Part shown: positions 3,007 through 55,838 of the stretch, one piece after another
How positions within the stretch are numbered: the first letter of the stretch is position 1
Layout of the letters: each line of letters opens with the position of its first letter
Sequence record: PQ066597.1
DNA length: 64,000 nt
Reading direction: 5' to 3' (one strand)
Program-made: the position numbers and the translations under genes
The notes under the pieces: model-generated
Databases searched by the model: none
The model's input: the letters and a program-made list of their open reading frames with translations, nothing else
Told to the model about the DNA's origin: nothing

Positions 3007-3497
3007 TATTTTGTCCCCGAAGAACCAATCCCAGCAGACCCACGAACAGTTTGTGTATCGAAATCATCAACTTGGTTAAACTTGATCTGGTTGAATACAG
3101 GGATAAACACCATCTGACAGAAACGCTCACCCTTCGGAATATGCAAAACCTTGTTGAAGCTCATCGGGTCGTCTTCGTTAACAATATGTTCATTCCGGAC
3201 CTTCACCATGATCTCACCCTGATAGTTTCCATCGATAAGACCAACAGTGTTAGCCAACCGGGTATAGAATTTGAATCCAAGACCAGAACGAGGGAGAACC
3301 ATTGCAGCAATACCAACACCCGGAATACCAGTATCGATCTGACTCATATCAAACCGCATACCAGTGTTAACGATGATATCTTCGCCCGGTTTCAACATAA
3401 TAGCTTCTGGTGTGCGAAGGTCAATAGCTGCATCACCTTCTCGTTGAAAATCAGGACAAACACCATATTCAAAACCACTAATAAAATTCATGTTCAT
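3006..3497 (-). CDS. dut: trimeric dUTPase
   Basis: AAIDL, LPRSG, GLIDGNYQGEI, GERFCQ and RGSAGIGSSG cover motifs I-V. Confidence 0.95.
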   Translation of the reverse strand: MNMNFISGFEYGVCPDFQREGDAAIDLRTPEAIMLKPGEDIIVNTGMRFDMSQIDTGIPGVGIAAMVLPRSGLGFKFYTRLANTVGLIDGNYQGEIMVKVRNEHIVNEDDPMSFNKVLHIPKGERFCQMVFIPVFNQIKFNQVDDFDTQTVRGSAGIGSSGTK

Positions 3498-9005: not shown

Positions 9006-10115
9006 TTAACCGAACAACTGGTCAACTTCATCAAACACTTCCTGAGATACTTCAACTGCTTTCAGTTTGTATGCATCAGACACAGCATCCATAAAAGGCT
9101 TATGAGAAAACATGGGTTTCCAGAATTCCAGAGAGTTGGAATCCTCTTCTGTCCATTTCTTTTCATCATCGGTGATCAGATACATCTCACCAGTTTCAAG
9201 GTCGAGATAATTGCGCTGATAACGTGCGTTTTGTGGTTTGGTAACAAAACCAAGCTCTTGTGCAATCTTTAGCAAACCTGAATATGTATTAATACCACCT
9301 TGGAAGGAAACTTGCAAGTCCAATTTGGATTTTTCTTTGATAGTTCGGCTCTTTTCCGCATTCATAACAAAGTTATAACCCAACAGCTCTTTGCCATCTT
9401 TATCCTGTTGTTTACCAAGAATAATAACGGTGTCGGCGGAATACATCGGACCAGTGCCGCCACTCATAACAGTTTTACTGTACATCTCTTGGGTTTCGTA
9501 TGTGTGGTTTACAGCAATACACGGAATGTCATTAACAGTCAGGTAAGGGGTAACCATACGGAACAGACTCTTGATCTGCTTTGCTCGGGTCATATCCTGT
9601 GCAGACTTTTCATTCTTCGCATCTTCAAGTTCTTTCTTAGAAGCAACGTTACCGATAGAGTCAATATAGATAATAACCTTATCACCACGTTTGACAGCTT
9701 CCAGTTTCTTAACGATATCGAATTTAAGTTCTTCTACGTCAATAAACGGACAATGTACAACCCGGTCAATATCTACACCTTGAGAAGTAAAATAATCAGG
9801 AGTAGAACCGAATTCATTATCAAAGAACAGACAAACTGCATCCGGATACTTACGAAGATAAGCAGAAACCAGAACCAAACTCAGGTTAGATTTAAAGTGT
9901 TTAGACGGTCCGGCAATACAAGTTAGACCCGGCTTCAAACCACCATCAAGATGACCACTCAACATCAGGTTAATGATCGGGACACGAGTCCGGATTACAT
10001 CCTTGTCGTTAAAGAAAACGCTATCGGATAGCATAGAACTCATTTTATTTGAGGAAGTACCAGACAGACGTTCCAGAAGGGCACCAGTATTAACCGTTTT
10101 TGCTTTTTTAGCCAT
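9006..10115 (-). CDS. uvsX: RecA-like recombinase UvsX
   Basis: AGPSKHFKS Walker A, FDNEFG, IDSIGN, SGGTGPMYSAD. Confidence 0.97.
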   Translation of the reverse strand: MAKKAKTVNTGALLERLSGTSSNKMSSMLSDSVFFNDKDVIRTRVPIINLMLSGHLDGGLKPGLTCIAGPSKHFKSNLSLVLVSAYLRKYPDAVCLFFDNEFGSTPDYFTSQGVDIDRVVHCPFIDVEELKFDIVKKLEAVKRGDKVIIYIDSIGNVASKKELEDAKNEKSAQDMTRAKQIKSLFRMVTPYLTVNDIPCIAVNHTYETQEMYSKTVMSGGTGPMYSADTVIILGKQQDKDGKELLGYNFVMNAEKSRTIKEKSKLDLQVSFQGGINTYSGLLKIAQELGFVTKPQNARYQRNYLDLETGEMYLITDDEKKWTEEDSNSLEFWKPMFSHKPFMDAVSDAYKLKAVEVSQEVFDEVDQLFG

Positions 10116-10141
10116 TTTAATTTTCCTATATTAATATTTAA

Positions 10142-10552
10142 TTATTTAAATTCTTTTTCTAAAATCTCATGGTTCTTTCTTTTCGTCTTTATATCTTCTG
10201 GTAAATGTTTTAATCCAGAAAGGCGGATATATGTCGAATCTCTTGTAAGGAAGATAGATTTAAACTCACTTGAACCTTTAAATGGAGATTCAAACTCGAT
10301 TTTAATCACATCTCTATTTGGATTGACTTTAATGGCGAACCTAGAAATAAGTTCTTTATTGATGGAATTTTCTACAACTCTACTAACAAACTTAACCATA
10401 TCATCCGAATAATTCGGTTGATTGATAAATTCTTGGGTGAAACACTTATCTCGTATTGCATCAGAAATATCTGTATTTATATGTTCTTTTACCATTTTGT
10501 AATGGTCACCTGCGACCAAAATATCATGATACTTACTTTTTTGATCTGTCAT
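10142..10552 (-). CDS. hypothetical protein (where T4 has beta-gt/42/imm)
   Basis: 136-aa ORF with SD; no motif recognised. Confidence 0.65.
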   Translation of the reverse strand: MTDQKSKYHDILVAGDHYKMVKEHINTDISDAIRDKCFTQEFINQPNYSDDMVKFVSRVVENSINKELISRFAIKVNPNRDVIKIEFESPFKGSSEFKSIFLTRDSTYIRLSGLKHLPEDIKTKRKNHEILEKEFK

Positions 10553-27677: not shown

Positions 27678-29927
27678 TTAAATACTGCAACCAGCACAAT
27701 CAGCTTCTTTGGTTACTTCAATCCCTTCTTCACTACCATCACGAGTATTATGATAGTAAAGGGATTTCATTCCATACTTATTAGCAAAGACAACATCACG
27801 AAGAATAACGTGAATAGGGAGTTTGTTGTCTTCATAATTTGATGGGATATAACTAGTGTTCGCACTAATACCTTGGTCGAAGAATTTTTGGATGACAGCA
27901 CATATAGACAGATAACCAGTCATCCCACCGCGATTAACCATTTTCCACAGAGGTTCATATTCATCAGCAAGGAATTCTACATCTGGAACAACCTGATTAA
28001 ACGAACCGTCTTTAGAAGCTTTTACGCTCACCAGAGAGCGCACCGGTTCGATACCATTAGTTGCATTTAGGAGCTGTGAACTACTCTCAGCAGGCATTTG
28101 TGCAGTTACGGTATCATTACGAAGACCATACATTCGGATTTGACCACGCAACCATTCCCAATCTTGTTTTAGATCATTTGGGGTTAGGTCATCCACATTC
28201 TTGTTATACCAATCGATGGGAAGCAAACCATCAGCCCACTTGGTCCGATCATGCCATTCACTACGACCTCGCTCTTTAGCAAGTTCCATAGACGCTTGAA
28301 GCAAGGAGAACTGCATAGCCTCAATATGCTCGTGTACCAACGAAAGCGCGGCTTTGTCGTTATATCCAACATAATTCTTTGCCAAGAAGTATGCCAAGTT
28401 TACCACACCAACACCAAGAGCACGACGTTTTTTTGCAGCAAGAGCTTGTTTTACTGGATAATCTTGATAGTCCAACAGATTATCGAGAGAACGAACGACG
28501 ATTCTTGCCAATTCGAGATAATCATCTGTCGATTCAATCATACCCAAGTTAATAGCAGAGAGGGTACATAGTGCGATTTCTTCCTGATTTGATCCCATAG
28601 CATAAGTTGGTAAGAAAATCTCTTGACAAAGATTTGACATTTTGATCTTTTCTTTGTACGGGGTCTGTTTATTCATGTTATCAACAAACAAGCAATAGAT
28701 CCGACCAGTACCAGCCCGTTCTGTCGCAAATGCAGTAAACAATTCAGATGCTTTAATACGCTTCTTGCGTATAACGTGGTTCATCTCAAGTGATGCATAA
28801 CGTTTCCTAAATTTGGTATCATCTGCATCATAGAAGTCTTCATACAACCGACCACAATCAACGTCAGGGCTGAATAGGGTGATATACCCATCATCACGCA
28901 ATCTCTCCAGAAACAGCTTGTTGATATGCACACTGTAATCAAGACCCCGGATCCGGGTTTCATCAGTACCCTTGTTATTCTTCAATACAAGCAGTTTCTC
29001 AACCTCCAAATGCCACATAGGGTAATTCAGAGTAGCAGAGCCACCACGTAGAGCACCTTGTGAACAGCTCTTAACCGCAGTATGGAAGTGCTTGTAGAAT
29101 GGGATTACGCCGGTATGGGTTGCTTCGCCGTTACGAATGGGTGAACCCTCGGCACGAATAGCACCAGCATTAATACCAATACCAGCACGTTGACTGATAT
29201 AGCTAATAATAGATGCGGACGTATCGTTAATAGATTTCAGAGAATCACCAGATTCAATTTTCACACACGAACTAAATTGGCGAGTTGGGGTGCGGGCACC
29301 ACCCAAAATAGGGGTTGGGATTGAAATCTTAAATAGAGAAGCCGCATTATAATAGTTGATTACGTGTTGAAGTCGGTTTTCTTTTTCACTCTGATGCAGA
29401 GCCATGGCAATTCCCATATAAAGGAATTGGGGAGTTTCGTACATCTCTTTAGTTACTCGATTTCGAACCAAGTACTTTTCTTTTAACTGCATTGCACCAG
29501 CATATGTGAAATTCATATCTCGGGAATGATCAATATGAAGATTGAGATATTCAATATCTGCCGGGGAATATTGTTTCAGAAGGTCTTTATCATAAAATCC
29601 AAGGTCAACCAATTTAGAAATATGGTCATACAATGAAATTGGGTCGAATTGTCCATATACATCCTTACGAAGGGTGTACATAGTTAAACGACCTGCCACA
29701 TATTGATAATCCGGTTCTTCAACGGAAATCATATTTGTTGCAGCTTTAATAACTTGCTTTTGGATATCCTTCGTGTTCATACCATCTGTAATGGATGACA
29801 TTGCAGCATCAAGAATAGCTTGTGGATCTGCTTCTGTATTCTCACACGCAAATTCTATGACTTTTAAAATCTTATCCTTGCTAAATTCTTCGGTAATACC
29901 GCTCGATTTTACAACTTTACTGATCAT
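27678..29927 (-). CDS. nrdA: class Ia RNR alpha subunit with ATP cone
   Basis: PTRQFSSC, SNLCQEI, LCTLSA, MPAESSSQ, KSLYY, C-terminal CAGC. Confidence 0.97.
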   Translation of the reverse strand: MISKVVKSSGITEEFSKDKILKVIEFACENTEADPQAILDAAMSSITDGMNTKDIQKQVIKAATNMISVEEPDYQYVAGRLTMYTLRKDVYGQFDPISLYDHISKLVDLGFYDKDLLKQYSPADIEYLNLHIDHSRDMNFTYAGAMQLKEKYLVRNRVTKEMYETPQFLYMGIAMALHQSEKENRLQHVINYYNAASLFKISIPTPILGGARTPTRQFSSCVKIESGDSLKSINDTSASIISYISQRAGIGINAGAIRAEGSPIRNGEATHTGVIPFYKHFHTAVKSCSQGALRGGSATLNYPMWHLEVEKLLVLKNNKGTDETRIRGLDYSVHINKLFLERLRDDGYITLFSPDVDCGRLYEDFYDADDTKFRKRYASLEMNHVIRKKRIKASELFTAFATERAGTGRIYCLFVDNMNKQTPYKEKIKMSNLCQEIFLPTYAMGSNQEEIALCTLSAINLGMIESTDDYLELARIVVRSLDNLLDYQDYPVKQALAAKKRRALGVGVVNLAYFLAKNYVGYNDKAALSLVHEHIEAMQFSLLQASMELAKERGRSEWHDRTKWADGLLPIDWYNKNVDDLTPNDLKQDWEWLRGQIRMYGLRNDTVTAQMPAESSSQLLNATNGIEPVRSLVSVKASKDGSFNQVVPDVEFLADEYEPLWKMVNRGGMTGYLSICAVIQKFFDQGISANTSYIPSNYEDNKLPIHVILRDVVFANKYGMKSLYYHNTRDGSEEGIEVTKEADCAGCSI

Positions 29928-30002: not shown

Positions 30003-30905
30003 ATGGAAAAAATTAACTATGGTCACTGGGTAACTGACGAGCAGTTTGACCCAAAAACGGTTCTTGGTTTTGTGTATATGATTACTTTCTCCAATGGTAA
30101 AAAATACATTGGAGCGAAACGGGTTTGGAAAAACCTAAAACGCCCGCCATCCACATACAAGAGGCAGGGTAAAACAGAATTTATTGAATCTGATTGGCGC
30201 TCGTATAGGTCCAGTTCAAACGAAGTGGTTGAACTGGAAACCAGAGGTATAGAGATCTCAGAGATGAGGATCCTCGCCACCTATGATTCTTGGGGTAAAG
30301 TACTTCTTTTAGAATGTATGCTCCAATTCTCGCTCAATGCGTTAACCTCCGATATATACCTAAACAAGCAAATTGAAGGCATGTTTACGGGGGCATGTTT
30401 TGATAAAAAGGTATACGATGACGTTGCTCGTCTCGTTGCGATTGAGCAATATGATGAGTCTATCCCACAGGTAATTGTTTACCGTGGTGGAGACCGGAGT
30501 GTTATATGTGACAAACAATCAGCAAAAGAATACATCAAAGCTGGTTGGTCTGTCGCGTCTTTACCAGAAAAATATCATCGTAAAAGTATTCCAATGGTTC
30601 CCTATACAATCAAATGTAAGGAAACTGGAACTGAATATACCATCAGTGATTTCAAAACTCAATACGAAGTTTCAAAAAAACTTGAATGTGTTGCAGGGGA
30701 TCTTAGTCGGCTTCGCTCTGGTGAAATTCTGAACATAGGTTCATACACCATGAAGATTCAACGGGAACCCCAACGTTGGGTAAAAGACGGAGTTTCATAC
30801 TACAGTACAGCAGAGTTGAAATCCGCAAAGGTTGACAAATCCGAGTGTGAACACTTCCCAGCAGAAGACCGGGAAGCTTACCGGATTAGATTGTCTAAGG
30901 CTTAA
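30003..30905 (+). CDS. GIY-YIG family (Seg-like) endonuclease
   Basis: GFVYMITFSNGKKYIGAK...ESDWRSYRSSS...LLLEC...YLNKQI. Confidence 0.8.
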   Translation: MEKINYGHWVTDEQFDPKTVLGFVYMITFSNGKKYIGAKRVWKNLKRPPSTYKRQGKTEFIESDWRSYRSSSNEVVELETRGIEISEMRILATYDSWGKVLLLECMLQFSLNALTSDIYLNKQIEGMFTGACFDKKVYDDVARLVAIEQYDESIPQVIVYRGGDRSVICDKQSAKEYIKAGWSVASLPEKYHRKSIPMVPYTIKCKETGTEYTISDFKTQYEVSKKLECVAGDLSRLRSGEILNIGSYTMKIQREPQRWVKDGVSYYSTAELKSAKVDKSECEHFPAEDREAYRIRLSKA

Positions 30906-31021
30906 TAAAGCGATGCCAAGACAGCGAAAGCCCATTCAACATAGAGATATGATAGAGATGGGTTTTTGTCAAAGGGGAACGGGATCAGTGGGATTGTTAC
31001 TGAAAAAGTTTTACTGTTCAT
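30902..31021 (-). CDS. unannotated 39-aa ORF with hydrophobic C-terminus
   Basis: MNSKTFSVTIPLIPFPFDKNPSLSYLYVEWAFAVLASLY; SD TAAGGA and an early promoter upstream. Confidence 0.55.
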   Translation of the reverse strand: MNSKTFSVTIPLIPFPFDKNPSLSYLYVEWAFAVLASLY

Positions 31022-31085: not shown

Positions 31086-31205
31086 ACAGATCTCGAACGT
31101 AGTGAGACGGCGTAGCCGCCTGTTCGCTTCGCTCACTCTTTCTAATTATAGATCTTCTATATAAATACTTATAGAGACTTTATACTTTGATTGCACTTGA
31201 AACTA
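31086..31205 (+). repeat. 120-bp structured element, copy A
   Basis: 114/120 identical to the reverse complement of 55681-55800 (manual alignment). Confidence 0.97.
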
Positions 31206-31219
31206 ATCCATAGACACGA

Positions 31220-31248
31220 AAAGCCTACCCAAAACAGGGTAGGCTTTT
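31220..31248 (-). terminator. terminator after gene 35
   Basis: AAAGCCTACCC / GGGTAGGCTTT arms with flanking T/A runs. Confidence 0.75.
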
Positions 31249-31252
31249 CATT

Positions 31253-35047: not shown

Positions 35048-35071
35048 AAAAAGCCACCCCGTAGGATGGCT
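35048..35071 (-). terminator. terminator between 34 and 35
   Basis: Minus strand GCCATCC-TACG-GGGTGGC-TTTTT. Confidence 0.7.
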
Positions 35072-35079
35072 TTGTTTTA

Positions 35080-38000
35080 TTAACTGATCCAAACAAAGTC
35101 AACAGACTTGGTAGTTGGGTTTGCTCTTATTTCTAAGAATTCTCCGTTACCAACTGCTATCCTAAGTTTATTTACGGTTGTTGTTCCATTCAGGTTAGAA
35201 TCACCATTTACGGTTAGCGCTTTCACCGAATTGATGATAAGCTCGCCTGTCATGGTATCACCACCCTTAAACACACGAGAACCAGATGTAGTATTCATAT
35301 CGTCTATCACGGAATCCAGATAGTCTTTACGAATTGCATCATCAGGATCAATCGGTAATGCACTTCCTATCTTAACTTGAGCATTTACCTTTAGGTCACC
35401 ATTCGATTCAAACGATGATGTATTTGATGGCGAAGATAGACCATTAGGGCGAATTTGTAATCCACCAAGAGAACCAATATTCAAACTCTCGTTTGCGTTT
35501 ATGGTTATCCCACTCTTAGAAGTATTACCCATCCATATATTTTGGACACCGCTGTTCTTAAAATATGTAGTATTAACAAAAGTCTTGTTACCGGTAATAG
35601 TTTCTGCGAAGTTACCCGGTCCACGAACATATCTTTCTTCTGCATAAGCAAAACGAACAAGGTGGTTCCCAGACGTTGGGTTCTGTCCGCCGTTTTGAAC
35701 TTGGTTGGTGAATATTGCATTACCATCCCGTTCAACAGTAAAGATCCTATAATATCTACTGTTTTCGTCCATTGCGTTAAGGATTAATGGACCATCAATC
35801 GTGTTTACACCAAGATCTAAAAACGCATTGCTACCCTGACGTTTCCACTGGATCATGGATACATGAGATGTAGTCGATGTTTCGTTGAGATAGAAATAAG
35901 GTCTAATCTTCTCAATAGACGGATTTGCGGTAAACGTCATTTCGCCGGTTATTGTTTGTGCGATAGTACGACGAACCCAATCAGTTGAAGGTATACGGTT
36001 TCCACCAACCTCCATTGCACTGGCACTTACAGCCACAGCTTTAAGTGGTAGGAAATTAGCTAATGCTGTATTCAAACCTCTCGGGGAAACCAATACATCT
36101 CCATGTGCGTAGCCTGTTAATGCTCTTGTAGAACCAAGAATATCATTGCCTTCAAACACGGAGTTAGCAGAGTTGTTGTTTGACAATATTGCAGTAATAC
36201 CAACACCATATCTAGTATCAGTCATTCTATAACCTGCACTATTTCTAGAGCTGGTTAGAGCGGTTAACGGGGTTAGGTATTTTGTGTTGTTAGTACCGGT
36301 ATCAACCTCAGATTGAGTTGCAATTTGAGACAAACCCGTTTGGGTTGTAGTCGCTAGTCTTGCACTCAGTTTCTTTGGAGTTACGATAATTTCGTCATTT
36401 GCGGTTCCGGTCATATCGTTTACTTCATTCTGAGTTGCAATTCTAGCAGTGCCTCGTTGTGACTCAGTAGGAATAACGATATTAAAAGATTGACCTTCCC
36501 AAATATTACCAACGGTTCTAAGTCCCGATGTATCGAACACAGTCAGTCTTTCTCTAGCTAACCAGTTACCAAACGTTTTTGGAGTAACAAACCATTTGTC
36601 ATGTAATGTCCCTGCATCTACTTCCGCTTGTGTTGCGGTTTCGGACAAACCCCAACGGGTTTCTGTTGCGGTTCTACTTACAAGCCCTTTTGCGCTAACG
36701 TGTACGTTGTCACCAGCCGGTGGAGTGTTGCTAAGTACTTCTGCTGCGGTTGCAGCCCTTGACAACCCGGTTAGTGATGCTGTAGCCTGACGTCCTTCTA
36801 GGGTAGTTGCGGTTACTACTAGCGCACCGGTTGCGGTGTCAGCAGTACCTGTGTTAACCTCCCCTTGGTTGGCAATGTACACCATACCTTGTGAAAACTC
36901 AGTTGCGTTTTTCTCAAATAGAGTTTTCGGAGTGATTACCTTACTATGATCATTATAATCATAAACACCTGTACCCGGAGTTGTTCTTGTGGTAGGCTTA
37001 GTTCCATTAGCTGAGACAAGAGCCGATAAACCAGTCATGGACTCTGTGGCAACTCTACCGTTAAGGGTAGATGGTGTGACCGCAACCTGAGCCCAGTTTT
37101 CACCGGAACCGGATTGTGCGTTTGCTTGACTCTGTGTCGCTACCTTCAACAAACCACGCATTGTTGTTGTAGATAGACGGTCGTTCAACAGGAACGGGCT
37201 TATTGCCACCCCGGACCATGCTTCATCGGATAGGTTTCCACTAACTGCCTTTGATTCACTATTAGATGCATATCGGGTGATACCACGCCGGACGGTACTT
37301 GCTGTTTTGTTAGCCAATGTTTCTGCGGTAACAAAATCCTCACAATCTGGGTTTTGACCTGTCGTGATCTCTTCTTTGTTCTTGTTTACAGATGATTGAG
37401 ATGCAATGGCAGCCATACCATAAAATTCTGGTACATTTCGGTCTACTCGATACGGAATCTCAGACATAGTAACAACCGACCAAACGTCTTTACCAGAACC
37501 AAGAGCATTTGTGAAGTACACAAATTCCCACTGTTCCCCACGGTTTTGGATATCAAATGACTGAGTTTTTACGGTCTTTGATTCCATATTAGCAAGAAAA
37601 TCGCGGTATGCGCTGATCCGGGGGTTCATTAGAGTGTTACCATCGGGTACAAAGAAATCATTTGTACTGGATGCATCAATATTTAAAGTTAAAGTGGAAC
37701 CCCTTTTCATGTATCGTGTGTCTATAAAGAAGCTATCACCTCTTGCCGCATCACGAGGGAATGTAATGTTGACAGTCGACGGAGTTTCAGTATAAACTAC
37801 TAGTCGGTCGTTTGGTTGACCTAAGTATGTGGATGTTTTGACACTTTTCCAACGACTAAGGTTGTCAGCGTCGAAAACTCTCCAAGCGTTTAGACTTGAA
37901 TCAAAAACAAACATACCCCAATCTGTAGAATCAAAAACGACCGTTTTCATTGGGGTCGATCCGTATTCAACTATAATGTTGTGGCTACTACCCGGATGAA

Positions 38001-43159: not shown

Positions 43160-44713
43160 ATGATTCTTGATATTCTGAACGAAATTAATACCGCCCGTGG
43201 TAGAGCAAAACTGGAAGTTTTGAAATCACATGTAGATAACGAACTTCTCTCCCGAGTATGTCTGATGACATACAGTAAGCAGATTACCTTTGGTATCAGC
43301 AAAAAGACATTCCCGGTTGTGTCATCCCATACCGGGGAATGCAGTCTTGAAAAAGCTCTAACTTTCATGATGGAAAAATTCGCAACTCGGGTCTTTACTG
43401 GTGGAGATGCTATCAGTAGACTTTCTGAAATTCTCAGTCAATTGTCTGAATCTGATTCGGAAGTGGTTAAAAGGATCATGTTTGGTGATCTAGATGTCGG
43501 TATTAACGTATCCACTATCAACAAGGTATGGAAAGGTCTGGTTAAAGAACAACCTCAGATGCTGAGTAGTCCAGAAGATCAAAAACTGATTGATAAAATT
43601 CTCAAACTTGGTAATGCATATGCAGAACTTAAGGCTGACGGGGCTCGTGGATTTGGTGATGTGACTGGATTGTCAACTGATGATGGTGTACATTTCTTTA
43701 CCCGTAGTTCAAACGAATATTTGGGTCTTAATCGCATTTTGAGAGCGATTGATAAGATGCAGTGTATTGGGTGGGTGTTGGACGGGGAATTCGTTGTACG
43801 AGCATCTGATGAGCCAGAAATCGATGTTATGGCAGCCCTTATGGGTGATGTTGAAGAAGTTGAACTGTCGAAAAGTAAAAAGTACGATAAAACTGTGTTT
43901 GACCGTGAATCTGGTAATGGGATCATGAATACATCCCTTAAAAACAGTATCACCCCGGAAGACTCAGAACGTGTTGTTTATCAGGTATGGGATATTGTAC
44001 CCCGTGATGTGTATTATGGTTTGGTTCCTTGCCCCCCAGAATTGACCCAACAGAAACGACGTAAAATTTTGATTGACTTTTTGTCTAAGTTGGATGATGA
44101 TTGTATCCAGATCATTGAGTCTACCCCTGTTAAAACCCTTGCTGATGTACGCCGCGTGTATCAGGGTTATGTACAGGATGGATACGAAGGTATCATTCTT
44201 AAACACGGCGATTCTTTGTGGGAAAATAAGCGTAGTAAACTGTTTGTTAAGTTCAAGGAAAAATACCCGTTTGACCTTCGAATCATTGAGGTTTACCCCC
44301 ATGACAAAGACCCTAACAAGGTTGGTGGATTTGTCATGGTTTCCGAATGTGGTACTATCAAGACAAACGGCGGCAGTGGTCTTACCGATACAACCCATAA
44401 AAAATCATATAGTTCGGTTGACATTTTTAATCATCCAGAACTAGAGAGATTCGAAGATAAGGGTGGACAATTTATCGAAATCTATATCCCGTTGGAAGAA
44501 CGTGGTGAACTAGACCGTGAAAAATTGATGCAGATGTACCGCGACGGGGAACTTGATGATATGATTGTTGAGTGTGAAGTTAACGCACCAACCACATCAA
44601 AAACCCGGAAAGCTGGTGATCCAGAGTATAGTTTCTTCTTGCCTATCATCAAGAAACTGAGATGGGATAAGAACACCGCAAACCGCTACGAAGATGTTTT
44701 TGTTGTCAGTTGA
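43160..44713 (+). CDS. 30: ATP-dependent DNA ligase gp30
   Basis: ELKADGAR, LDGEF, YQVWD, EGIILK, KRSKLFVKFK. Confidence 0.97.
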   Translation: MILDILNEINTARGRAKLEVLKSHVDNELLSRVCLMTYSKQITFGISKKTFPVVSSHTGECSLEKALTFMMEKFATRVFTGGDAISRLSEILSQLSESDSEVVKRIMFGDLDVGINVSTINKVWKGLVKEQPQMLSSPEDQKLIDKILKLGNAYAELKADGARGFGDVTGLSTDDGVHFFTRSSNEYLGLNRILRAIDKMQCIGWVLDGEFVVRASDEPEIDVMAALMGDVEEVELSKSKKYDKTVFDRESGNGIMNTSLKNSITPEDSERVVYQVWDIVPRDVYYGLVPCPPELTQQKRRKILIDFLSKLDDDCIQIIESTPVKTLADVRRVYQGYVQDGYEGIILKHGDSLWENKRSKLFVKFKEKYPFDLRIIEVYPHDKDPNKVGGFVMVSECGTIKTNGGSGLTDTTHKKSYSSVDIFNHPELERFEDKGGQFIEIYIPLEERGELDREKLMQMYRDGELDDMIVECEVNAPTTSKTRKAGDPEYSFFLPIIKKLRWDKNTANRYEDVFVVS

Positions 44714-51425: not shown

Positions 51426-51724
51426 AATACCCAAACATTTATTTTTCGAAGTACTGCACAGGGTCTTATTGGCGAAAAGGGGTTGGTGGTCGAGATGCAG
51501 AAGCACTCCCACGAAACAAACCACTTGAGTTCCTTAACGAACAGTGTGGTTTGGTAAATGTAGGTGTTCGATATTTTGTATGTACTTGTTGTGGTACTGC
51601 ACAAGACGAAGACCAACTTGTTGGTAATGTGTTTGCTGGGAAATATTGCAAAACCTGCTATGACAAAGAGCCACAAATTCGCAAATCTATTGCTGAAAGC
51701 AAAAAACCCGGTTTTTACGACTAA
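51401..51724 (+). CDS. hypothetical zinc-finger protein
   Basis: CTCCG...YCKTCY cysteine pairs. Confidence 0.7.
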   Translation: MCNEELQVKYPNIYFSKYCTGSYWRKGVGGRDAEALPRNKPLEFLNEQCGLVNVGVRYFVCTCCGTAQDEDQLVGNVFAGKYCKTCYDKEPQIRKSIAESKKPGFYD

Positions 51725-54480: not shown

Positions 54481-55278
54481 ATGGCATTGAATTATGTAGA
54501 AGAACCAGTAGAAAAAGAAACTAAACCAAAAAAGTCTACTGTGAAAAAACAAAAAGAACTTGACCTTGGGGTAATCAACGAAATTGTTGATGCTAATACC
54601 GCACCAGAAGCGAAAGCGAAAATTCAAGCATATGCTAAGGAATGTGGTTTTAAAATTAGCAAGTCTAATACTTCGGTTGACGATATGATCGTTAAACTCC
54701 TTGAAATGGCGGACGCCAAAGAGAATGAAAAACTGGACCTTGCACCGGAACCGAAAGAAAAAACCCCTTTTGTCGAACCAGTTGTAGTCGATGATGAATT
54801 CGACAATGTAGAAGAGGTTATTGAACTTGGTGTGGTTGAATCAATCAAAATTGATGATGGGGTGGTTAATATCAATACTCCTAACGATGTTAAAATTGAA
54901 TTCACTCCACCGAAACAACCAGAATATATTGATGCTTCTGGGTTTAAAACTCTCGACGAATTAATTGAAGATGAAAAGAAGTTCGTTAAAGAAAAAATGA
55001 ATTTGGAAACTACTAAAGATACCCAAGAACCGGATTTGACTTATGGTTTCAAGCCGAAAGTAAATCTGATTGGTGCTGTTGGTAACCAATACCTAAATTG
55101 CCCGTATTGGATTCTTGATTGGATCCTTGAGAAAGGACCGTCTTGGAAGAGTATTATTGATACTCATGAACGCGAACCGGATAAAGCACTTCTGAAAACA
55201 GTTCTTTATTACATCCAGATTAATGGTAGTGTGACATTGCGCGAGAGTCGTAATTCTCGTTTCCATACCATTTACTAA
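54481..55278 (+). CDS. inh: inhibitor of prohead protease
   Basis: C-terminal PYWILDWI...LYYIQINGSVTLRESRNSRF matches Inh; CTAAATA at 54448-54454. Confidence 0.88.
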   Translation: MALNYVEEPVEKETKPKKSTVKKQKELDLGVINEIVDANTAPEAKAKIQAYAKECGFKISKSNTSVDDMIVKLLEMADAKENEKLDLAPEPKEKTPFVEPVVVDDEFDNVEEVIELGVVESIKIDDGVVNINTPNDVKIEFTPPKQPEYIDASGFKTLDELIEDEKKFVKEKMNLETTKDTQEPDLTYGFKPKVNLIGAVGNQYLNCPYWILDWILEKGPSWKSIIDTHEREPDKALLKTVLYYIQINGSVTLRESRNSRFHTIY

Positions 55279-55283
55279 TATCT

Positions 55284-55308
55284 AGCCATCCTACTGGGTG
55301 GCTTTTTT
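55284..55308 (+). terminator. terminator after inh
   Basis: GCCATCC-TACT-GGGTGGC-TTTTTT. Confidence 0.75.
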
Positions 55309-55585: not shown

Positions 55586-55680
55586 TTTCGTATTGTATCA
55601 GACATTACGAATGTTTTTAACTTTTATACTTAGGTGGTCGAGAGATCACCTTTTTTGTATCTTTTATATACAAAATAAAA

Positions 55681-55800
55681 TAGTTTCACTTGTAATCAAA
55701 GTATAAAATCTCTATAAGTATTTATATAGAAGATCTATAATTAGAAAGTGTGAGCGAAGCGAACAGGCGGCTACGCCGTCTCACTACGTTCGAGATCTAT
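55681..55800 (-). repeat. 120-bp structured element, copy B (inverted relative to copy A)
   Basis: Reverse complement matches 31086-31205 at 114/120 positions. Confidence 0.97.
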
Positions 55801-55838
55801 TTATTTATAATGCTATTTAGGTGTGTTAAAATATCATC

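Follow-up and report, generated by a model that had tools for sequence, protein, structure and literature searches.

Six homologous palindromic elements on the chromosome of Aeromonas phage vB_AdhaM_G2 look like undescribed replication-start or special promoter sites

The DNA analysed here, a stretch of 64,000 nucleotides called the window below, is 100% identical to Aeromonas phage vB_AdhaM_G2 (PQ066597.1), a T4-type myovirus of the CC2 group with a genome of 229.6 kb. It contains two copies of a 118-nt element, which is present exactly six times in the full genome, in each case between genes, and makes up the main dispersed repeat of this phage. Judged from their sequence, the six elements look like undescribed replication-start or special promoter sites. 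The reading that we favour, with a probability of roughly 0.38, is that each of them is one of six homologous cis-acting sites functioning as transcription-activated replication origins of the phage chromosome. It proceeds from the anatomy of the element, its copy number, spacing, conservation, covariation and low duplex stability, all of which were registered directly. BLAST located the copies as follows (position in the record is equal to position in the window plus 62000):

record 3142-3245, minus strand: c1
record 51528-51640, plus strand: c2
record 93088-93205 (window 31088-31205), minus strand: c3, or copy A
record 117681-117798 (window 55681-55798), plus strand: c4, or copy B
record 159896-160009, minus strand: c5
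record 190092-190164, minus strand: c6, where the match spans the AT-rich half only

Copies A and B form an inverted pair separated by 24.5 kb, with arms of 118 nt that are 96% complementary. The near-identity of their GC-rich halves, pointed out in a preliminary description of the window, is borne out: a 35-nt GC core is the same in both copies, with no such matches (0) expected by chance, and the nearest and only difference in the vicinity of this half is at position 55748. An invertible 24.5-kb segment bounded by the two copies was considered and rejected, as all related genomes show one and the same arrangement and only two of the six copies belong to this pair.

The family occupies about 100 places across 20 records of related phages and is unannotated in all of these public genomes. 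The carriers are Aeromonas phages related to CC2, ZPAH1 and 65, classed in Emmerichvirinae wherever the record has a taxonomy line, and the phage 65 copy, used as a query, led to these 20 records again. A scan of viral contigs registered the element in phage 65 and CC2 only, and a pattern scan of metagenomes gave 120 hits, two of which were real and belonged to 65-like contigs. No description of the family was found in the accessible literature on phages 65, CC2 and P19. No run recorded as RNA contains the stretch, and a search for RNA or DNA time courses of infection found none.

The element is composed of an AT-rich palindrome (A-module) and an adjoining GC-rich hairpin unit (G-module), the main features of which have the following positions in the window:

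55681..55747, plus strand: A-module of copy B, an AT-rich imperfect palindrome of 66-67 nt delimited by alignments
31139..31205, minus strand: A-module of copy A, delimited by alignments
55702-55716 and 55725-55739: arms of the core dyad around an 8-nt centre, including TCTATA, TATAGA and TCTATA
55700..55705, minus strand: mirror -10-like hexamer TATACT, facing left
55736..55741, plus strand: perfect hexamer TATAAT, facing the G-module
55748..55792, plus strand: G-module of copy B, a GC-rich quasi-palindrome of roughly 47 nt from GTGAG to GTTCG
31094..31138, minus strand: G-module of copy A, placed by alignment with copy B
55754..55760, plus strand: mini-hairpin GCGAAGC inside a larger hairpin
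55766..55778, plus strand: apical 4-bp GC stem with a tri- or tetraloop

All motifs that had been read in copy B were recovered by position: the mutually pairing arms TCTATA (55711-16), TATAGA (55725-30) and TCTATA (55734-39), a possible sigma70 promoter made of TTGTAA (55690-95), a 17-nt spacer and TATAAG (55713-18), TATTTATA at 55719-26, which is TATAAATA on the minus strand, the outer stem GTGAG (55750-54) and CTCAC (55780-84) enclosing GCGAAGC (55754-60) and GGCG-GCTA-CGCC (55766-77), and, on the minus strand beyond the repeat, TATAAATA at 55802-09 and CTAAATA at 55814-20.

Within a genome the A-module is nearly invariant. Its centre in phages of the CC2/ZPAH1 type differs from that in phages of the 65/avDM6 type and is uniform inside each of these types. 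The dyad symmetry is confirmed by comparison of the copies: 19 proposed pairs are formed in 89% of the cells of the alignment, only 21-53% are formed if the pairing is slid by 1-3 columns, and compensatory changes were registered at two pairs. Hexamer TATAAT is retained in 28 of 29 aligned copies, and its leftward counterpart, TATAnT, is present in all of them and varies at hexamer position 5 only. Both face outward and both are devoid of a -35 element. The rightward hexamer may function as a promoter with a predicted start approximately at the boundary of the two modules near 55748, and its leftward mirror is likewise a putative -10 element. Less can be said in favour of the sigma70 promoter TTGTAA-17-TATAAG (55690..55718, plus strand) suggested previously. 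It is really present, with a -35 that varies from copy to copy (TTGTAA, GTGCAA, ATGAAA) and a -10 that ends in G across the CC2 clade, and because of this last base it is rejected by the promoter consensus scan.

The A-modules belong to the least stable duplexes of the genome. According to nearest-neighbour calculations with segments of 40 and 50 bp, the six of them take ranks 2-7 from the lowest stability in G2, where other loci of the same tail lie within about 1 kcal/mol of the elements. In phage 65 they occupy ranks 1-4, 7 and 8 (40 bp) or 2-10 (50 bp), despite the different centre. Applied as a control to the T4 origin oriF, the same measure gave z of about 2 within its 8-kb neighbourhood, so that oriF is not singled out and duplex stability is not a validated predictor of origins. 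No partial or degenerate copies of the A-module were found elsewhere in the G2 genome, which means that it does not represent a general promoter class. As a separate observation, the sole locus of G2 with a predicted duplex less stable than that of the six elements is situated at positions 10114-10166 of the window (record 72114-72166).

The G-module varies in sequence between paralogues, most of all in phage 65, and preserves its pairing. The inner stem pair of the mini-hairpin is C:G in 7 and T:A in 8 of 15 sequences and is unpaired in none of them (0/15), thereby confirming that this small structure is under selection; its loops are GAA, GTA, TTTA and TATA. In the 65-type it reads GTGAAAC, with a T:A pair closing the loop, the loops of two c6 variants contain four bases and do not belong to the GNA class, and in the c6 copies of phage 65 and avDM6 the stem is lengthened to three pairs. 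Two pairs of the apical stem switch between GC and CG across the copies. Compensatory changes maintain these stems. Two overall folds fit the alignment about equally, 88-90% of cells in either case: a long nested hairpin, which needs several G-U pairs, and a GTGAG/CTCAC stem around two hairpins with CGAAC/GTTCG as a pseudoknot or an alternative pairing (three-way junction). Since T-to-C replacement at alignment column 47 breaks CGAAC/GTTCG in 5 of 15 sequences and at the same time improves the nested helix, the pseudoknot is not established.

Folding energies add little to this comparison. The window copy folds no better than its shuffled versions (z from -1.2 to -1.5 for RNA and from -0.3 to -0.5 for DNA), and values from -4.5 to -4.9 are reached only by some paralogues in other phages; the evidence for structure is therefore provided by comparison of the copies and not by folding energy. 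The two strands of 17 variants differ on average by 0.04 kcal/mol, with the forward strand favoured in 6 of them. Altogether, the pattern of changes indicates that hairpin potential is selected on both strands, and a strand-specific RNA was rejected on the ground of their equal folding. The motif at the 3' side of the G-module was detected only in copies of the element. Past the G-module itself, one strand continues with TACGTTCGAG and the other with TCTTTCTAA, and there is no U-tract. An intrinsic terminator was discarded as well, because T-runs are lacking and neither strand was flagged by the terminator scan. The preliminary statement that this is not a plain terminator is consistent with that, the real terminators being upstream and outside the repeat.

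RNA families gave no better match. A search of the window against Rfam at the gathering score was empty, a search of the region with E up to 10 returned noise only, and ARAGORN found no tRNA or tmRNA. The interleaved pairs GTGAG/CTCAC and CGAAC/GTTCG resemble the P1-P2-P3 order of HDV-like ribozymes, yet this candidate was also rejected, as it has no Rfam hit and its linker is TAC, TTC, TTT or GGT depending on the copy, so that the catalytic C which such ribozymes conserve between the last two strands is not preserved.

The distribution of the copies along the chromosome is peculiar. Matching of flanks by tblastx showed that the six sites are orthologous in G2, ZPAH1, 65 and avDM6, and the same six positions are kept in phages of the CC2, ZPAH1 and 65 types, with none elsewhere. 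On the 229.6-kb circle the gaps between copies are 48.4, 41.6, 24.6, 42.2, 30.2 and 42.6 kb. If six points are placed at random on this circle, the probability is 0.006 of obtaining a minimum gap equal to the observed one or larger, 0.001 of a maximum gap equal to it or smaller, and 0.001 of a coefficient of variation as low as that registered. The copies are spaced much more evenly than would be expected at random (P about 0.001-0.006), a value that refers to a single set of sites, since orthologous copies in other genomes are not independent samples. Four of the six copies have the same direction as the flanking genes, c2 and c5 are antisense to them, and three of the six lie beside structural genes.

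Orientation turned out to be changeable. The G-module is reversed relative to the A-module in c6 of G2 and in c4 and c6 of ZPAH1, and the reversed module of ZPAH1 c4 is the exact reverse complement of the G-module of ZPAH1 c1. In c3 of ZPAH1 it is the A-module that is inverted relative to the flanks, and it now represents a fuller palindrome made of two left arms. The A-module of c5 in phage 65 is also inverted relative to the flanks. At this site phage 65 (record about 102150-102355) and avDM6 (78292-78746) have two inverted A-modules flanking a 72-nt spacer, where two other small GC hairpins replace the G-module. From these rearrangements the function of the element appears to be independent of orientation.

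Paralogous A-modules of one genome are 88-91% identical. Between G2 and phage 65 the identity of orthologues is 72.6% and that of non-orthologous pairs is 72.3%. Because orthologues are no more alike than non-orthologues, the uniformity of paralogues in each lineage is a result of concerted evolution or of co-evolution with a trans-acting factor. The six copies constitute one sequence family, and the properties that they share should consequently be counted as one or two observations rather than six.

The immediate surroundings of the two copies in the window are formed by the following signals:

55632..55651, plus strand: intrinsic terminator upstream of copy B, found by the terminator scan, outside the repeat
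31218..31249, both strands: hairpin of a bidirectional terminator that separates the tail-fibre gene from copy A, outside the repeat
55814..55821, minus strand: CCTAAATA, the predicted apparent late-promoter consensus of G2, pointing into copy B

Copy B resides between the terminator of a 73-aa ORF and a SLOG/DprA-like gene. Copy A is bordered on one side by the long-tail-fibre gene with its bidirectional terminator and on the other by a 39-aa ORF. The upstream terminators of c3 and c4 are different. Directly downstream of copy A, before the ribonucleotide reductase gene, there are the annotated 39-aa ORF (window 30902-31021, minus strand) and, oppositely directed, a gene of a homing endonuclease (30003-30905, plus strand). 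Promoter-like sites were found between the element and the next start codon at c3 (TTTACA-17-TACTAT), c4 (TTTATA-17-TAAAAT with TG) and c5 (CTAAATA); c4 orthologues also carry CTAAATA. Only in c1 does the element run directly into a gene: a ribosome-binding site and a start codon come within about 10 nt of its G-module, and there is no further promoter. At c2 the leftward hexamer has a suitable position for gene 0129, which starts about 40 nt away.

The late box TATAAATA of T4, to which the early interpretation assigned motifs at copy B, does not withstand comparison with the rest of the genome. It is depleted in G2 (22 observed, about 35 expected), late genes carry CCTAAATA instead, and 65-type copies of the element are devoid of it; a T4-type late promoter at the element was therefore rejected. 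The late-promoter consensus of G2 appears to be CCTAAATA rather than TATAAATA. Across the G2 genome CCTAAATA was registered 34 times with about 14 expected, in late regions on the correct strand, and it precedes gp23, gp24, inh and the hub gene. All other xTAAATA heptamers are depleted in G2.

As to other regulators, G2 encodes an AsiA homologue (record 186116-186343, minus strand, 73.8 bits), and searches of G2 and phage 65 with the Pfam models MotA_activ and MotCF found none, the MotA_activ search having no positive control. AsiA without a detectable MotA raises the question of what activates middle transcription.

If the elements are transcription-activated origins, the 66-bp AT-rich palindrome would serve as a DNA unwinding element. 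The -10 hexamers at its edges, or promoters of the neighbourhood reading in, would supply the transcript that opens or primes the A-module, as in oriF and oriG of T4. The G-module with its very stable GNA mini-hairpin would either bound the melted region or, folded on the displaced strand, act as a signal for loading or priming. Unwinding, priming and any other role in replication we infer from sequence features. This scheme fits six intergenic copies of about 100 bp at the same orthologous sites in three phage types, their even spacing and orientation independence, the extreme meltability of the A-modules and the presence of -10 hexamers. It also fits the existence of separate promoter-like sites for the genes at c3, c4 and c5, the lack of looser A-module copies, selection of hairpins on both strands and the recurrence of GCGNAGC mini-hairpins at priming sites (PMC13037366). 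The origin-like reading put forward in the preliminary description has thus gained in plausibility from the six conserved positions, the over-even spacing, duplex instability of the AT-rich half and independence of orientation.

Several observations speak against replication origins. A homologous family of origins would be unlike the T4 model, because origins of T4 share no sequence motif. The TGCTT (MotA) box is absent from the element, and the MotA domain is undetectable in the genome. No consistent shift of GC or AT skew beyond effects of transcription direction was found at the six sites. Preservation of all six sites in each lineage fits a local non-redundant role, for instance in gene expression, no less than redundant origins. 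By analogy with oriF and oriG of T4, which are themselves promoters, the two interpretations are not exclusive. A more specific version, which we put forward tentatively and consider rather doubtful, regards the six elements as a sequence-defined homologous family of origins, where a cruciform-prone palindrome and a mini-hairpin loading signal are read by a lineage-specific trans-acting factor. Such a factor would explain the joint change of six copies between genera.

In T4, at least five origins, each about 100 bp long and combining a promoter with an AT-rich unwinding element, are dispersed over the genome, and there is no sequence motif that they have in common (PMC3016281). Among known systems, the R-loop origins oriF (ori uvsY) and oriG (ori 34) are the nearest in proposed function. 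The new element resembles them in its size of about 100 bp, in the combination of promoter-like elements with a predicted AT-rich unwinding region and in the dispersal of several sites around a circularly permuted genome of the T4 type; its 118 bp contain a low-stability stretch of 40-50 bp by a measure that misses T4 oriF. The T4 origins differ in having a MotA-dependent middle promoter (TGCTT box near -30) with the unwinding element downstream, and the element in forming six homologous palindromic sites without a MotA box and with a GC hairpin unit. As for the position, c4 adjoins inh, and oriF is about 3 kb off, at uvsY, according to the T4 rep_origin annotation; oriF is the origin covered by this comparison.

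Among described repeats, the nearest in kind are PeSLs (Arbiol 2010; Comeau 2014), which are also composite conserved intergenic motifs of T4-like genomes with promoter-like boxes and a stem-loop and are possible substrates for homologous exchange. Their own order is a terminator stem-loop, a sigma70 -35/-10 promoter, a ribosome-binding site and a start codon. In the element the conserved hairpin is on the other side of the promoter-like boxes, terminators are outside the repeat, and both orientations occur. What may correspond to the PeSL promoter is TTGTAA-17-TATAAG with the varying -35, not accepted by the scan, and TATAAT hexamers without -35. PeSLs are numerous and clustered in hyperplastic regions, in contrast to six evenly spaced copies, some of which are in regions of structural genes. 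A canonical PeSL was rejected since the motif has no upstream terminator and is not represented by many hyperplastic copies, each before a ribosome-binding site.

Mini-hairpins of the GCGNAGC type recur at priming sites of phages and plasmids (PMC13037366). Complementary-strand origins of G4, St-1 and alpha3, ssiA of RSF1010 and early promoters of N4 have the same compact GNA mini-hairpin in a larger hairpin, as the element does at what is proposed to be a starting point of nucleic-acid synthesis, and GCGAAGC of the element agrees with the form typical of ssi-type signals, GCGNAGC or GCGNNAGC within a larger hairpin. Those signals operate in single-stranded DNA of small phages and plasmids and are recognised by particular primases or, in N4, by the virion polymerase, and the element deviates from them by the T:A closing pair of the 65-type and by the non-GNA four-base loops of two c6 variants. 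REP and BIME sequences are also imperfect GC-rich intergenic palindromes of either orientation, in some cases adjacent to an AT-rich module that binds protein. REPs, however, are numerous, evolutionarily mobile and linked to RAYT transposases, and the element has six fixed orthologous sites and no sign of mobility. In ColE1-type origins with a primosome site, the origin opened by a transcript is located beside a hairpin which, once single-stranded, attracts the machinery of the lagging strand. Only this logic is shared, as an analogy, with no homology to the element in sequence or architecture; T4-type phages load helicase through gp59 rather than PriA.

A close rival, only somewhat less probable than origins, is that the repeat is a purely transcriptional cassette, i.e. 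a compact bidirectional -35-less promoter/operator with a hairpin, possibly used after AsiA has remodelled sigma70 and with the aid of an activator. The G-module would then be a 5' hairpin of the rightward transcript, which stabilises or insulates it, making the element akin to PeSLs with another architecture. Near-universal conservation of TATAAT and its mirrored TATAnT agrees with this, as does coincidence of the predicted start with the boundary where conservation shifts from sequence to structure. A 5' hairpin works either way round, matching the inverted G-modules. The gene at c1 has no promoter other than the element, the leftward hexamer of c2 is placed for gene 0129, and AsiA is present in a genome where MotA is undetectable. 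Each of the six sites is individually kept, and conserved intergenic repeats of phages usually prove to be promoters, PeSLs among them. On the other hand, early promoters of G2 are ordinary TTGACA-N17 sites, and the element has no such -35. Only six copies exist, without degenerate relatives, and separate promoter-like sites precede the genes beside c3, c4 and c5. One direction of several copies leads antisense into a gene or straight into a terminator, and a promoter function does not predict even spacing. An architectural or enzymatic DNA site, where adjacent palindromes extrude cruciforms or bind a dimeric protein, would account for that spacing, as well as for independence of strand and orientation and for the dyad symmetry conserved in both modules. 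It could be a strong topoisomerase site, a domain boundary or a programmed cleavage or recombination site seeding recombination-dependent replication. The sequence, lineage-specific and internally uniform, is compatible with co-evolution with a protein acting in trans; no candidate for such a binding partner was found, however, and AT-rich palindromes arise easily, which leaves this idea improbable.

Concerted evolution of paralogues (88-91% identity against 72-73%), together with sharp boundaries and both orientations, would also be expected from a MITE- or REP-like repeat, selfish or neutral, that had spread to six intergenic sites and was kept similar through gene conversion only. We consider this very improbable: the six positions are orthologous across two genera without gains or losses, the stems are maintained by compensatory changes, and the family is absent outside this phage subfamily. 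Inspection of flanks revealed neither terminal inverted repeats nor consistent target-site duplications, and a mobile MITE/REP repeat was rejected for the latter reason and because the sites are orthologous in all three clades. Still a little less probable is a gene of a small structured RNA of about 50-100 nt starting at the boundary of the modules. The predicted start is indeed directly before the covarying hairpin unit, and in c5 a hairpin terminator about 20 nt past the G-module would give an RNA of roughly 100 nt. The remaining copies, however, have no common 3' end, the sequence of the G-module is not the same in all paralogues, some of which carry it inverted, folding shows no strand bias, and there is no Rfam match with E up to 10. 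On these same grounds the structured sRNA proposed earlier as an alternative to an origin has weakened.

T4 is the textbook model of multi-origin phage replication, and since its origins have no shared motif, origins are not predictable in its many relatives. Six homologous evenly spaced sites would offer a directly testable handle, one 120-bp sequence in six places. They would bear on the start of replication and the organisation of transcription in large T4-type genomes, on the trans-acting reader of such sites and on the upkeep of identical dispersed copies. If the elements are true origins, G2 would become the first T4-like phage with origins readable from sequence, and their architecture would be new. 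If they are promoters only, they would make a new class of bidirectional -35-less promoters in a phage with AsiA and no recognisable MotA.

Other repeated signals of the genome were registered along the way. The early region (record 5649-49028) has classical TTGACA-N17 promoters, and T4-type early promoters with GTTTAC were rejected, as no such family exists in G2, where TTGACA types are used instead. Several early -35 elements are in or next to a terminator hairpin and form PeSL-like composites, for instance at 29316-29388 and 44524-44609, which are distinct from the six-copy element. A second repeat is the terminator hairpin AAGCCA-CC...GG-TGGCTT with a T-run (window 35048-35086 and 55269-55307, record 159855-159890). 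It follows three genes, namely the first long-tail-fibre gene, inh and, beside c5, the tail-tube gene, and two of its three copies are within 40-400 nt of a copy of the element. Finally, upstream of c1 (record 3246-3340) and downstream of c6 (189990-190090) there are perfect inverted repeats of 16-23 bp with AATCAATT/AATTGATT.
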